Below are positions 5,172-44,954 of a stretch of 64,000 bases of DNA, piece by piece. A model generated the notes under the pieces. The model searched no databases and was not told the origin of the DNA. It saw only the letters and a program-made list of their open reading frames with translations. Origin of the DNA: Geosiphon pyriformis uo1 (Eukaryota; Fungi; Glomeromycota). The stretch is from positions 561,095 to 625,094 of the forward strand of contig JAAOMT010000571.1 in NCBI GenBank assembly GCA_016748015.1, read 5' to 3'. Position numbers and translations under genes: made by a program. Each line of letters begins with the position of its first letter. Positions within the stretch are counted from its first letter, which is position 1.

Positions 5172-7650
5172 TATTACCGGATAAAAGCTATGGATTTGTA
5201 ACTTCTTAGCAACAACAATAACTTTCACCTGGAATACACATTATCATGATTATGCTATGGACTATAGCATATCATAGATGTATGGACTATTTCAGTAAGT
5301 GGGAGAGCAAAAAGGGGTATGTGATAATGTTATTAAAAGTGAAAGAAAGTATTGTTATTATTATTTGTTTTGGGCAAGAACCAGTCTTAGGTATTTGAAA
5401 AGGGGAAAAGAGAAGTCACATCTCTTTATATGTATCAGAAGCACAACCAGCAACAAAGAGTGAAACCAACTACTCAAAGAAATATGTAACCAGAATTTTT
5501 TCAATTAGTTGTCGAAAGGATGTGGTGTTCAAATGCCCACTTTGAAAATGAAGTTATAAGAATTATAAAAAGAATTATGAAAGTCAAACATAACTGAAAT
5601 AGATTTTGTTTAAACTTTTTATTGTTGAGACCACTCTCTAACAATGTGATACTTTATTACTTATTTTTATATTTAACAATTTGTTTAGTGAAACAAGACT
5701 TAATGTGAAATGATGATAACACATGATTTAAAAGATCAAAAATAATAGAACAACTTGAAATGGTAATAACAAATAAGTAAAAGATTATAAACAACATGAT
5801 TCCAAATAATAATAAGGAATATGAGGAGACATACTTGAGATTGTGATGACAAGTATTTAAAGCATAGAAAGGGAAAAGAGTGTGTAAAAAGTAGAGGAAA
5901 GGACTAACTGCTCACTATAAAATTATAGCAAAGAGTTGGCTTAGTATTGAACTGATACTTTTCTGAGCTGACAGAGAGGCTATATATATAGCTAAATTAC
6001 ATCCAATCTACATACTATATTATAACTATTTAAAATACATCAATTATTTATATACATTTAATTAATCAATTCATGATGAGCTTACTCAGTCTGTTATTTA
6101 TTCAAAAGCTAATAATTTAGATAATCAGATTTTAGATGGCTTGATCTAGAACATTAATTGTAAATTAATGATACCAATTGTGATTATGATCAACATAATC
6201 AGAAGTAGATCAATTGATTACATTTCTTGGTAACTACTTTTAACCATTGATTACAAATCTGGAATGTTAGATTGTTTTAATAAGGGTGTATGAGAATTTT
6301 GGAGTATAACAAAACCTGTTGTTATCTGATTACATGCATCAATCATTCATTTCCATTGGTGTTTCTTAGTTTGCCAAGATTTCTTTATATCCAACTTAGT
6401 TAAATTGTTGGATTGTGCTATATTTTTTTGTTGTAATTAGATTGATTGCTGATCATTTATTTCCAGATTGCTGGCTGATTTTGTTGATTAAGTGTGATGA
6501 TGTAGGCTTTTTTTGCATGATTTTGATGTTAATTTTCATTGTATGTGTTGTAATTTTTGCATTGAAAAATGAGAAAATCTTCCGGTAACATTTTCTCTAT
6601 CTTTGAAAAATGAGCTCCTGCAAATTGTTAAATTTTTCTTCCTCTCTAGGAAAAATCAAAGTCTTCTGAGATATCTAAAGGTTATTTAAATATTCATAGT
6701 TGTCTCCATACTGACAACAAAAAGCACCATATATTACTGGGTGAAAGCTATGAATTTGTAACTTCTTAGCAATGACAATAACTTTCACCTAGAACACACA
6801 TTATCATGATTATGCTATGGACTATAGCATATTATGGGTGTATAGACTATTTCAGTAAGTGGGAAAGCAAAAAGAAATACGTGATAATGTTATTAAAAGT
6901 GAAAAAAAGTATTGTCATTATTATTTGTTTTTGGGCAAGAACCAGTCTTAGATATTTGAAAAGAGGAAAAGAGAAGTCACATCTCTTTATATGTATCAGA
7001 AGCACAACCAGCAATAAGGAGTAAAACCAACTACTCAAAGAAATATGTAACTAGAATTCTTTCAATTAGTTGTCAAAAGGGTGTGGTGTTCAAATGCCTG
7101 CTTTGAAAATGAAGTTATAAGAATTATAAAAAGAATTATAAAAGTCAAACATAACTGAAATAGATTTTGCTTAAACTTTTTATTGTTAAGACTACTCTCT
7201 AACAATGTGATACTTTATTACTTATTTTTATATTTAACAACTTGTTTAGTAAAACAAAACTTAATGTGAAATGATGATAACACATGATTTGAAAGATCAG
7301 AAATAATAGAACAACTTGAAATGATGATAACAAATAAGTAAAAAATTATAAACAACATAATTCCAAATAGTGATAAGGAATATGGGAAGACATATTTGAG
7401 ATTGTAATGACAAGTATTTAAAGCATAGAAAGGGAAGAGAGTGTGTAAAGAGTAGAGAAAAAGACTAACTGCTCACTATAAAACTATAGCAAAGAGTTGG
7501 CTCAGTATTGAACTGATACTTTCTTGAGCTAACAGAGAGGCTATATATATAGCTAAATTACATCAGATCTACATACTATATTATAACTATTTAAAATACA
7601 TTAATTATTTATATACATTTAATTAATCAATTCATGATAAGCTTACTTGG
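5172..7650 (-). mobile_element. Non-autonomous LTR mini-element (family D): complete 3' LTR 5172-6590, 141-bp internal region, 5' LTR 6732-7650 truncated by A2
   Basis: Direct repeat 5172-~6090 vs 6732-7650. The LTR ends with CCGGTAACA at 6590. PPT at ~6591-6604 and PBS (TGGTGCTTT) at 6721-6729, both on the minus strand. Confidence 0.85.
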
Positions 7651-41665: not shown

Positions 41666-42265
41666 TCATATGCGATCTTTCCCCAAGTCAATCTTTCGTT
41701 CGGGATTCTGTATTACGATTAAAAGGTATTTGTGCTCTGTGACGTCTAGTTCACAAAAGAGAAGATTTAATCAAAAAGCTTTATTGATAGAATATTGTGG
41801 AATCCATTTTGTTACCTGGGGCAACCAGAATTTCATATTGCTTGCTTCTGACACGAAGAAATGTCAGTTCGTTCTGAATTGACAACAGCAATATTGATTA
41901 TTAGATTGCTCAAAAATGATTCCATAAATATAATAAAGACTCAGATGCTCTTGAAGACTACCCTATTTCTGCTCAATTTTTTATTTCTCCGGTACTTACG
42001 CTGTCACTCTCGTCCACCTCAGAAATTAGATTCTGAGTCTGTTTGACAAGTTTTGCAATCTTTTCAGCATAGAGTTTTGTCTGAATCGCATCAAAGGTGG
42101 TCTTAATTATAGAACCTTCTTTGTCGGTCGCCAACACCCCTTTAACATGCGAATTGACAATCAGGGGTTTCATAATTTCGTCCAAGTCTTGTGATGTCTA
42201 TATCAAAGGATCAAAAAAATCAAAAAAGAGAAAAACTTAGAGAAACAGCAAGAATAACTTACCAT
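41666..42265 (-). CDS. Dynein light chain, roadblock/LC7 type; exons 42263-42265, 42000-42197, 41816-41873, 41666-41736
   Basis: VKGVLATDKEGSIIKTT...[31 protein letters not shown] is the roadblock signature. Canonical splice sites. Confidence 0.92.
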
Positions 42266-42557: not shown

Positions 42558-43965
42558 TTAATCATCCCATTCTGGTGGAGGACCTAGTTCATGGCTCTGC
42601 ATTCCATTATAATCGTTGGCTTCTCGTTTATACATTTTTTTCAAGTTATCTCCCTGGTGTCCATTATAAGGACGGTCTATATTATTACAATCCAATTGTC
42701 CAAAATAATTTGTTCCCATCATGTATTCCTCAATATTTCCAACCTCACTGGCGAGATATTCCCAATTAACTTCGCGTCCAGAATATGAGTTTTTGCCCTT
42801 ATATTTTCTACCATCTTGACTTGAAGAATCTAATTCATTTTTATAACCAACCTGTTCAATGAATTCGCTATAGCTGAGTCCTCCTCGACGATTACGAACA
42901 TTTTCATCATATAACCTTGAAAGCCCCAGAGCCCTTTGCACCTCATCTTTTAATGTTTTCCATTCAGCGTCGTGAACCGCTTCACGACCAATAAAAAGGT
43001 AATCATAGCCTAGATAGAGAGTTTTTATTTAAAGAACAGATTTGATTCGATGAATTTTCATGATGGAAAAGGAGTTAAGCGTACGTAGCTTTCCCACAAT
43101 TGGTAATGCGTATCGAATCGACTCTCTTAAACGACGTCTAATGCGCATTAGATATTGCTCTTTTCTATTTATTTGTTGATAGTTAGTTATAACTTTATAG
43201 CGAAAAGTCTGAATCGGAATAATTGATGACAAAGCTATTTTAAAGATGTGATCAGTTGATTTTTTAATTAAGGGAATTTCATTTAAATAATTTTTTTTAA
43301 AACATACAATAAAAAACATCCTCTGGTCGCCACTTCCGGCATACCAAGGTGAAAAATTTATTAGACGTGGATGGATGAACTCTTTTTTTCAAAATATCCT
43401 TAATCGTCATTTCGTCTATGATGTGCATCTAATTGTTGATTATTAAAGATTTCACAGAAATATACAAGGGATTCACCAGAAATATCCCTTCTGTTTTAAA
43501 TCAAGATCAGTTTATAATATTAAGAATTTTCGCGGAACTTGCCTCATTGGGATGTAAAAGAGGAACGCATTTTCCGTCTGGGGATTTTTTTAGAAAACTT
43601 TTCTCATCCGGAAAATCTAAATTTTTCAGTACTTGTTTTTGCTCCAAGCTTAATTTTGAAAATTCCTCAGATCGATTGAAACCATCTTGGTGGGATAGAA
43701 CTTTGGAATGTTGATTTTCCAGAACAGGCCAACTTTCTTGGGGTGGCTCGAAATTTTGATCTTTCCTTTCCAAATTAGGCCAACTTTCTTTGGAAGTGTC
43801 AAAATTTTGATCTTGCTTTTTGCTAGAAGACCAACTTGTTCTCTGGAAGGTATTTATAGAAAATGGTATAAACCATGGTCTTGAACGGTGAGACCCTGAA
43901 ATTTTTGGATGGGCAACCTGTTCAAAAGTAACTTGACGCAATCTCAACGGTAGAAGCTTGAACAT
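42558..43965 (-). CDS. 381-aa protein with a central RnpA-like (bacterial RNase P protein) domain, probably mitochondrial; exons 43543-43965, 43308-43428, 43085-43234, 42558-43009
   Basis: The spliced model is in frame (one GC-AG and two GT-AG introns). Core RIRRRLRESIRYALPIVGKLRYDYLFIGREAVHDAEWKTLKDEVQRAL resembles RnpA helix 2-strand-helix 3. Basic N-terminus MFKLLPLRLRQ. Gene confidence is high; function confidence is moderate. Confidence 0.65.
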
Positions 43966-44222
43966 CAGGTAGTTAATAAATTCGTTGCTAACATCCGCAG
44001 CCACGAAAAAACACGTGTACGAATCTCATTATTAATTTTTAATCAAAAAACAAATTTTTATTTTTTAATTATTATATTTATTAAAATATTATTATAAACA
44101 TCACAAATTAATTTTTCCAAGGTATACTGTAACTTATCTGACGTCATGTTTGTCCAAGGAAATAGTGACAAAAAACGTCATCCTCCATATGATAGATAAT
44201 ATTTCCGAACACATGCGACAGA

Positions 44223-44954
44223 ATGAAATTCCCAAACGTCAACGTTTTCTTTCCTAGAAAAGCGTTAGAGTTATTTCCTATTAAACAAATATCAAGCCGA
44301 AAGTCAGTTGCGTTTTTTGCACCGAGGACGCGTCTCTTTTCCCTTAGCTCACAAGTACAACAACAAAAGCAGGAACATGATAGTCTTGAAACATTTCTTG
44401 CTCTCAAAAATCTGAACACAACAGCTTCTGTCTATACTGGCACTTTATATGAATATGAAACAATTCACTGTCTCCAAAATATTTTTGGAGTTGATTCAAG
44501 ACGAACTGGTCAATCTTATGATTGCGGGATTGACTTCCGTGGATATTGGACGTTTTTCGGAAAAAGATTATGTTTAATTGGGCAATGTAAAAATCATTAT
44601 ACAAGATGTGGTCCAAGACATGTCCGTGAATTAGAAGGAACACTCAGTCACGAATCACCTGCAACATGCGGAATTCTTTCCGCAAAAAAAGGATTTACTG
44701 AGGCAGCTAAGTTACAATTTAAAGCATCACCGTGGCCGTTAATTTTGATGGCTGTTAGGCCAGGTGGCGATAACTGTGAATTATTTATGTGGAACAACGC
44801 TGCTGAGCATTTTTTCGATGGATTTCAAGTAACAGTCCAATTTGAGAATCATCCGGAAATCCCAGCCTTAACAATCGAACGACCGGTTTTGATGTATCAA
44901 GGAAAACCTTTTAAAACATTGCTTAAAAAACAAAAACTTTTAAATCAACAGTGA
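44223..44954 (+). CDS. RRG7: RRG7-like (DUF2034) mitochondrial PD-(D/E)xK restriction-endonuclease-fold protein
   Basis: SVYTGTLYEY, D.GIDFRGYW, IGQCK, P.HVRELEG; presequence-like N-terminus; single exon. Confidence 0.8.
   Translation: MKFPNVNVFFPRKALELFPIKQISSRKSVAFFAPRTRLFSLSSQVQQQKQEHDSLETFLALKNLNTTASVYTGTLYEYETIHCLQNIFGVDSRRTGQSYDCGIDFRGYWTFFGKRLCLIGQCKNHYTRCGPRHVRELEGTLSHESPATCGILSAKKGFTEAAKLQFKASPWPLILMAVRPGGDNCELFMWNNAAEHFFDGFQVTVQFENHPEIPALTIERPVLMYQGKPFKTLLKKQKLLNQQ

Follow-up and report, generated by a model that had tools for sequence, protein, structure and literature searches.

In bacteria the protein subunit of ribonuclease P (RNase P), RnpA, binds the RNase P RNA (P RNA) near P4 through the helix that carries its RNR motif, and holds the leader of the precursor transfer RNA (pre-tRNA) in its cleft (PMC4919922). 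A review of 2012 considered this bacterial protein to be without eukaryotic homologues (PMC3790967), and a review of 2016 mentions the case of the prasinophyte Ostreococcus only; in Ostreococcus tauri and other prasinophytes a bacterial-like RNase P protein is encoded in the nucleus (Lai et al. 2011, as cited in PMC4919922). For fungi it is established that the mitochondrial DNAs (mtDNAs) of zygomycetes encode a bacteria-like rnpB, that Rpm2p is confined to budding yeasts with the mitochondrial RNase P protein subunits of other fungi given as unidentified (PMC3790967), and that PRORP is absent (PMC10941002). Here we describe a nuclear gene of Geosiphon pyriformis, found in a window of 64,000 nt (contig JAAOMT010000571.1, positions 561,095 to 625,094 of the forward strand, assembly GCA_016748015.1), which lies on the minus strand at window positions 42558-43965 and has four exons and 381 codons for a protein of 381 residues. 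The central ~115 residues of this protein are, on sequence and modelled fold, almost certainly an RnpA domain of bacterial type.

The Geosiphon gene and those of the Ostreococcus type are alike in being eukaryotic nuclear genes for RnpA homologues presumed to serve organelles derived from bacteria. Judged by its sequence the Geosiphon gene belongs with that type, since it is nuclear, contains three spliced introns, has nuclear neighbours (RRG7 and Roadblock genes) and encodes a basic, acid-poor N-terminus that is a putative targeting signal. O. tauri belongs to another kingdom; its organelle genomes encode P RNAs and its protein complemented Escherichia coli, neither of which is known of Geosiphon. 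Rpm2p of Saccharomyces cerevisiae would be a functional analogue, being the nuclear-encoded partner of a mitochondrially encoded P RNA, although it is an unrelated protein (PMC3790967); no likeness to it was noticed here, and no search aimed at one was made.

Searches for the domain were made with exons singly and with a GenBank model of 234 residues (P0001), which stood for exons 2-4. Individual exons had no match in Pfam or NCBIfam, as is to be expected of a domain divided over three of them. P0001 scored 22.3 bits against PF00825 (E 1.4e-4) and its residues 1-115 scored 24.1 bits, with residues 65-112 placed on profile positions 59-105 in both cases, and the score of the Geosiphon protein for TIGR00188 of NCBIfam was far under the cut-off. 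When exon 4 and P0001 were searched against proteins by word index, each found nothing beyond the protein itself, and phmmer with P0001 had no match among PDB sequences. Against 1.84 billion representative proteins phmmer gave ten matches, namely the protein itself, two bacterial RnpA and seven fungal proteins, from Ambispora (1e-27), Rhizophagus clarus (2e-18), Gigaspora rosea (4e-18), Gigaspora margarita, Acaulospora, Dimargaris and Smittium; a word search by profile extended the set by Rhizophagus irregularis, Funneliformis, Racocetra, Cetraspora and Rhizopus microsporus. These fungal relatives reach 34-49 bits against PF00825 (E 3e-8 to 5e-13), bar Ambispora and Dimargaris (P0007), which score below the cut-off at 17.8 and 16.2 bits, and a longer Dimargaris model (P0015) has no PF00825 match at E<=0.01. 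A profile made from the fungal family recovered eight distinct RnpA chains among the PDB sequences, followed by one weak unrelated match, and a fungal-only hidden Markov model gives bacterial RnpA up to 65 bits. When the fungal profile was aligned to a bacterial RnpA profile with hhalign the result was 99.1 % and E 1e-18 over 91 columns, covering residues 11-114 of P0001.

Structure prediction with AlphaFold2 from the single sequence, without an alignment, was uninformative and gave an all-helical model with a predicted local distance difference test (pLDDT) score of 49. With a family alignment of 19 rows the pLDDT was 85.7 and the predicted template modelling score 0.79, and the predicted elements H-E-E-E-H-E-H are in the order of RnpA. 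Foldseek with this model placed RNase P proteins (S. aureus, T. maritima, B. subtilis) in all of the top 14 PDB positions, at template modelling scores of 0.61-0.72, and then, with much weaker scores, EF-G and Lon domains, which have the same superfold. An earlier sequence-only reading of the locus had proposed an RnpA-like domain, and both profile and structural similarity to RnpA were found, by PF00825, by hhalign and by Foldseek. Bacterial RnpA (PF00825; 1A6F of B. subtilis, 1NZ0 and 3Q1Q of T. maritima, 6D1R of S. aureus) has the same fold and element order in a domain of ~115 residues, and has in common with the Geosiphon protein an arginine-rich helix 2 (R-I-R-R-R-L-R-E in Geosiphon), a conserved proline after it and a D-Y-hydrophobic strand 4. 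In contrast to bacterial RnpA, the Geosiphon protein is encoded in the nucleus by a gene with three introns and is 381 residues long, with extensions of 141 residues at the N-terminus and ~115 at the C-terminus, both already noticed in the earlier reading, a loop between strands 2 and 3 that is 11 residues longer, and an insertion of two residues before the RNR motif.

The coordinates of the gene were set from consensus splice sites and transcript-derived contigs, and all of its features lie on the minus strand. Exon 1 (43543-43965) encodes 141 residues and is joined to exon 2 in a transcript contig, from which intron 1 (43429-43542; 114 nt, phase 0) is missing, a non-canonical GC..AG intron with donor GCAAGT. 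Exon 2 (43308-43428), matched by the family profile in the genome search, encodes helix 1 and strands 1-2 of the RnpA-like domain; exon 3 (43085-43234; family profile 60.9 bits) encodes strand 3 and the long helix 2 with a remnant of the RNR motif; and exon 4 (42558-43009, with the stop at 42558-42560) encodes strand 4 and helix 3, up to ~42909, and then the C-terminal tail. Between these, intron 2 (43235-43307; 73 nt, GTATGT..TAG) and intron 3 (43010-43084; 75 nt, GTACGC..TAG, directly 5' of a Y-D-Y-L motif) are both in phase 1 and both absent from the transcript contig. The domain thus spans 42909-43410 in the genome, corresponding to residues 1-118 of the GenBank model, and is split by introns 2 and 3.

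The transcript contig in question, of 1031 nt, comes from the only public run with DNA of the locus (X1, library type not on record), maps to 43845-42553 with zero mismatches and omits exactly the three introns, so that the two GT..AG and one GC..AG introns are all backed by it; additional contigs of the same run carry transcript coverage up to 44020. Searched at the DNA level with exon 4 and by profile with the family alignment, the assembly gave one locus both times; it holds no paralogue of the gene and no second PF00825 sequence, and since the locus is single-copy the intron-less contig must come from RNA that had been spliced, a retrocopy in the assembly being excluded. The gene is therefore real, expressed, single-copy and nuclear, and its product has 381 residues. 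The start at ATG 43965 is the first in-frame ATG downstream of an in-frame TGA at 44028-44026. A minor form removes an optional in-frame intron within exon 1 (43843-43917; 75 nt, GT..AG) and with it 25 codons of the presequence-like region, its joint 43842/43918 occurring in a 57-nt contig at depth 19 as against depth 65 for an unspliced contig over 43816-43947. A short upstream open reading frame (ORF) of 13 codons, out of frame (43991-44029, minus strand), has its start at 44029, a little outside the transcript end as mapped, at 44020.

The peptide stretches quoted in the earlier reading are present on this strand within 42558-43965, and all three of the splice junctions that it predicted are supported by the intron-less contig. 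Its description of the gene as hidden was right for the full gene, whose exon 1 is not annotated, and wrong in that GenBank already has the 234-residue model from exon 2 onwards. This model, G9A89_021937, is a "hypothetical protein" of the 1.4-Mb contig, unnamed and without a precomputed Pfam hit; it matches exon 4 at 100 % and uses introns 2 and 3, but it begins at ATG 43410 inside exon 2 and so lacks the 147 N-terminal residues.

By sequence the Geosiphon gene represents the Archaeosporales in a family of orthologous nuclear genes with introns that extends over Glomeromycotina, Rhizopus, Smittium and Dimargaris. Orthologues were found in Rhizophagus (R. clarus GES99627.1, R. irregularis P0017), Funneliformis, Gigaspora (G. 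margarita KAF0403425.1, G. rosea RIB11682.1), Racocetra, Cetraspora, Acaulospora, Ambispora (CAG8570487.1), Rhizopus (R. microsporus P0023), Smittium (S. culicis OMJ07481.1) and Dimargaris. Geosiphon and its orthologues have in common intron positions, an insertion, presequence-like N-termini and a junction motif, (T/M)H.ID..T(I/L), before the domain. Ambispora and R. irregularis have all three Geosiphon introns at matching positions and in matching phases, and the third is found in Rhizopus microsporus also, in phase 1 and just before a (H/Y)-D-(Y/L) motif; the Ambispora homologue of intron 1 stands at the same codon boundary with the donor GTTAGT. Every fungal member has the two-residue insertion ahead of the RNR motif, and in all of them the loop that joins strands 2 and 3 is longer. 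The genes of R. irregularis and Rhizopus sit among eukaryotic genes (ATP10, ARPC4 and EI24; EMC1 and an F-box gene) and contain introns. For Ambispora leptoticha the public model CAG8570487.1 (311 residues; CAJVPS010002523.1) omits the counterpart of Geosiphon exon 2 together with the 5' portion of exon 3, but these parts are intact in the DNA (L001:4001-5531) with canonical splice sites, and so the real Ambispora protein would have a complete RnpA-like domain. Over the 84 domain columns that the truncated public model does contain, Geosiphon and Ambispora are 50 % identical.

In a maximum-likelihood tree the Glomeromycotina including Geosiphon form a clade (support 99/92), Smittium and Rhizopus form another (98/86), and Dimargaris is a rogue long branch. 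Both fungal clades share one polytomous group with two further bacteria and the alphaproteobacterial set, apart from the other Pseudomonadota in the sample. The closest bacterial sequences are alphaproteobacterial and Sphingomonadales-like, in a bacterial sample that was biased by its selection, the search for related loci having given almost only Sphingomonadales and the other Pseudomonadota being mostly without taxon labels. An alphaproteobacterial, that is mitochondrial, source of the fungal family is compatible with these sequences but not shown by them. A single fungal origin seems favoured because the insertion and an intron are shared, and the shared introns and insertion also show the family to be old in fungi rather than a recent transfer from an endosymbiont. 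Of the two sources between which the earlier reading wished a phylogeny to decide, a recent endobacterial one is thus excluded, and the alphaproteobacterial one stands as compatible only.

In the RNR motif the Geosiphon copy departs from the consensus A-x-x-R-N-R-x-K/R-R-x-x-R/K of helix 2. Its motif region (43122-43166, minus strand), in which transcript contig and genome agree, reads R-K-E-Q-Y-L-M-R-I-R-R-R-L-R-E, so that the first half is gone and the second half, R-I-R-R-R-L-R, is present; the replacement of the A..RN part by E-Q-Y-L-M, which the earlier reading had described, is borne out by the alignments. In B. subtilis numbering A57 has become E, R60 L and N61 M, with R62, K64 (as R), R65 and R68 retained, and the K52 and K53 that precede the motif are N and Y; the motif is left with four of its six conserved basic residues. 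Ambispora has part of the same erosion, and these two are the eroded members of the family (22 bits for Geosiphon and 18 bits for Ambispora against PF00825). Most orthologues, unlike Geosiphon, have a canonical motif (A-V-V-R-N/A-R-I-K/R-R-R-I-R-E) and 34-49 bits, those of Rhizophagus, Gigaspora, Smittium and Rhizopus among them. By its RNR motif the family appears to qualify as RnpA, with the Geosiphon copy as a probable derived member.

The Geosiphon extensions are the longest among the orthologues compared. Exon 1 starts with a basic, acid-poor, presequence-like stretch (six K/R and one D/E in the first 35 residues), and the full-length orthologues also begin with basic, acid-poor segments of this kind. 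Further on, the N-terminal extension holds a tandem repeat of two 17-residue units (DQNF..ESWP; window 43732-43815, minus strand) without a counterpart in the orthologues, whereas the last ~20 residues of exon 1 match the Ambispora protein, and the junction ...E|MHIIDE is kept in Ambispora and Rhizophagus. The C-terminal tail of ~115 residues is of low complexity and without a family match, its start (LY..GG..Y.E.I..VGYK) being common to Ambispora.

How the protein came by its likeness to RnpA can be considered before what it does. Were it an unrelated arginine-rich protein that resembles RnpA by chance, the lack of Pfam matches for single exons, a public model just at the threshold and the lack of a direct phmmer match in the PDB would be expected; the transitive and profile-profile homology (E 1e-18) and the fact that RnpA alone is matched in the PDB, both by sequence profile and by fold, would not, and a chance resemblance is very improbable. 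A recent horizontal transfer or a contamination from a bacterium, for example a Nostoc symbiont or an endobacterium, would agree with the bacterial type of the domain and with the Sphingomonadales-like nature of the nearest bacterial sequences. It is effectively refuted, and left with a negligible probability, by the three spliceosomal introns, all three of which are in Rhizophagus and the third in Rhizopus. The ~34 % G+C of the gene region is that of its surroundings and so host-like, the 1.4-Mb contig places the gene between RRG7 and Roadblock genes, the protein nests in the Glomeromycotina clade, and the assembly has no other PF00825 sequence.

For an old, nuclear, RnpA-type gene the simplest reading is that these fungi have a mitochondrial RNase P built on RNA and that the family supplies its missing protein subunit. 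The basic N-terminal extension would direct the Geosiphon protein to mitochondria, where the domain would bind RNA by its arginine-rich helix, with the four remaining basic residues, and by its central cleft, and the protein would act as cofactor of an RNA-based RNase P that trims the 5' leaders of tRNAs, a role modelled on bacterial RnpA and on the proposed organellar role of the nuclear-encoded Ostreococcus homologue. In favour of this reading, fungi lack PRORP, as said above, and a search of the assembly made without a positive control found none. Taken as a whole, an old nuclear RnpA-type gene for a mitochondrial RNase P cofactor is moderately favoured as the best explanation, but for the Geosiphon protein itself the cofactor role has about even odds or slightly better, the Geosiphon lineage being without a known partner P RNA. 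Several observations weigh against the reading as a whole. The Pfam score of the Geosiphon protein stands exactly at the gathering score and covers the C-terminal half only; the AlphaFold2 alignment contained four bacterial RnpA rows, which makes the model no independent evidence of homology; and mitochondrial targeting was judged from the composition of the N-terminus alone. The loss of A57, R60, N61, K52 and K53, together with a long branch (1.69), fits a relaxed or changed binding of RNA. As to the partner, the published mtDNAs of Glomus and Gigaspora list no rnpB (PMC3630166), and RF00010, the bacterial-type P RNA, had no match in the Geosiphon assembly even at E<=10 in a search that scored 16 of 692 candidates, the nuclear RNase P RNA gene being found as a positive control (RF00009, 127 bits, contig C651:700572-700885). 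However, COX1 also had no match, so that the assembly would be without a working mtDNA. One contig of 7459 nt (C52) has ends that repeat (1-1020 = 6440-7459), maps as a circle and carries nad4L (PF00420, 53.7 bits); it matches nothing in Rfam and resembles no other contig of the assembly in DNA sequence, and the contigs numbered next to it (C43-C63) are all of 2-57 kb.

The main alternative is a repurposed RnpA, an RNA-binding protein, mitochondrial or other, that would have no partnership with P RNA in Glomeromycotina or at least in Archaeosporales, and that might act in the processing or turnover of mRNA or rRNA or with another RNA. The earlier reading had put forward both possibilities, a subunit of a bacterial-style mitochondrial RNase P and a repurposed RNA-binding protein. 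The gene is kept across the subphylum although the mtDNAs of Glomus and Gigaspora have no annotated rnpB, erosion in Geosiphon and Ambispora has reached the initial half of the RNR motif and the lysines ahead of it, Geosiphon has long added terminal regions as well as its long branch, and an activity independent of P RNA has been claimed for S. aureus RnpA (title of PDB entry 6ov1). Yet Rhizophagus and Gigaspora, also without annotated rnpB, retain the canonical RNR motif, which argues for a partner of P RNA type somewhere, and the Geosiphon protein still has the fold and four of the basic motif residues, with no alternative partner known; repurposing is accordingly a tentative alternative and rather unlikely. 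The degenerate motif, the long branch and the marginal Pfam score might also be those of a relic, transcribed but decaying after the loss of the mitochondrial P RNA. That seems improbable for a frame of 381 codons that is intact over four exons and correctly spliced in RNA, with an Ambispora orthologue that has the same exons and the 50 % identity given above, and with a hydrophobic core and fold that are predicted confidently. Between the cofactor reading and repurposing lies a more speculative view, doubtful at present, in which the Glomeromycotina keep a mitochondrion-directed RnpA without rnpB in mtDNA and without PRORP. They would then have either an undiscovered P RNA, whether cryptic in mtDNA, carried by an unusual mitochondrial element, or encoded in the nucleus and imported, or a role of RnpA independent of P RNA, and Geosiphon and Ambispora with their half-eroded RNR motif and added domains would represent a transition in progress.

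Of the neighbouring genes, an intron-less ORF of the RRG7 family (44223-44954, plus strand; PF10356, E 9e-18; also Mrr_cat) is arranged head-to-head with the RnpA-like gene, with ~200 nt between the mapped 5' transcript end (at least 44020) and its ATG. The two may have a shared promoter for two mitochondrion-related genes. Downstream, the RnpA-like gene is adjoined by an exon of a Roadblock/LC7-domain gene (41973-42185, minus strand; PF03259, 22.3 bits).

As to whether such a protein has been reported before, which the sequence-only reading could not say, GenBank/UniProt automatically names three relatives 'ribonuclease P protein component', and a precomputed PF00825 hit exists for most of the relatives. 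No publication on a fungal RnpA came up in full-text literature searches, whose coverage does not include Lai 2011 and Lechner 2015, and an earlier mention is possible. Two public gene models are corrected by the present analysis, that of Geosiphon, from which exon 1 is missing, and that of Ambispora, in which an exon is skipped. The Geosiphon copy offers a naturally 'mutated' RNR motif for comparisons of structure and function.

Which proteins partner the mitochondrial RNase P RNA of fungi outside the budding yeasts has been an open question for decades. A nuclear RnpA family in lineages whose mtDNA has a bacteria-like rnpB, such as Rhizopus and Smittium, provides a directly testable candidate for this subunit, and the persistence of the family in arbuscular-mycorrhizal fungi, with no rnpB listed in their mtDNAs and no PRORP, sharpens the question of how the 5' ends of mitochondrial tRNAs are processed in these organisms.

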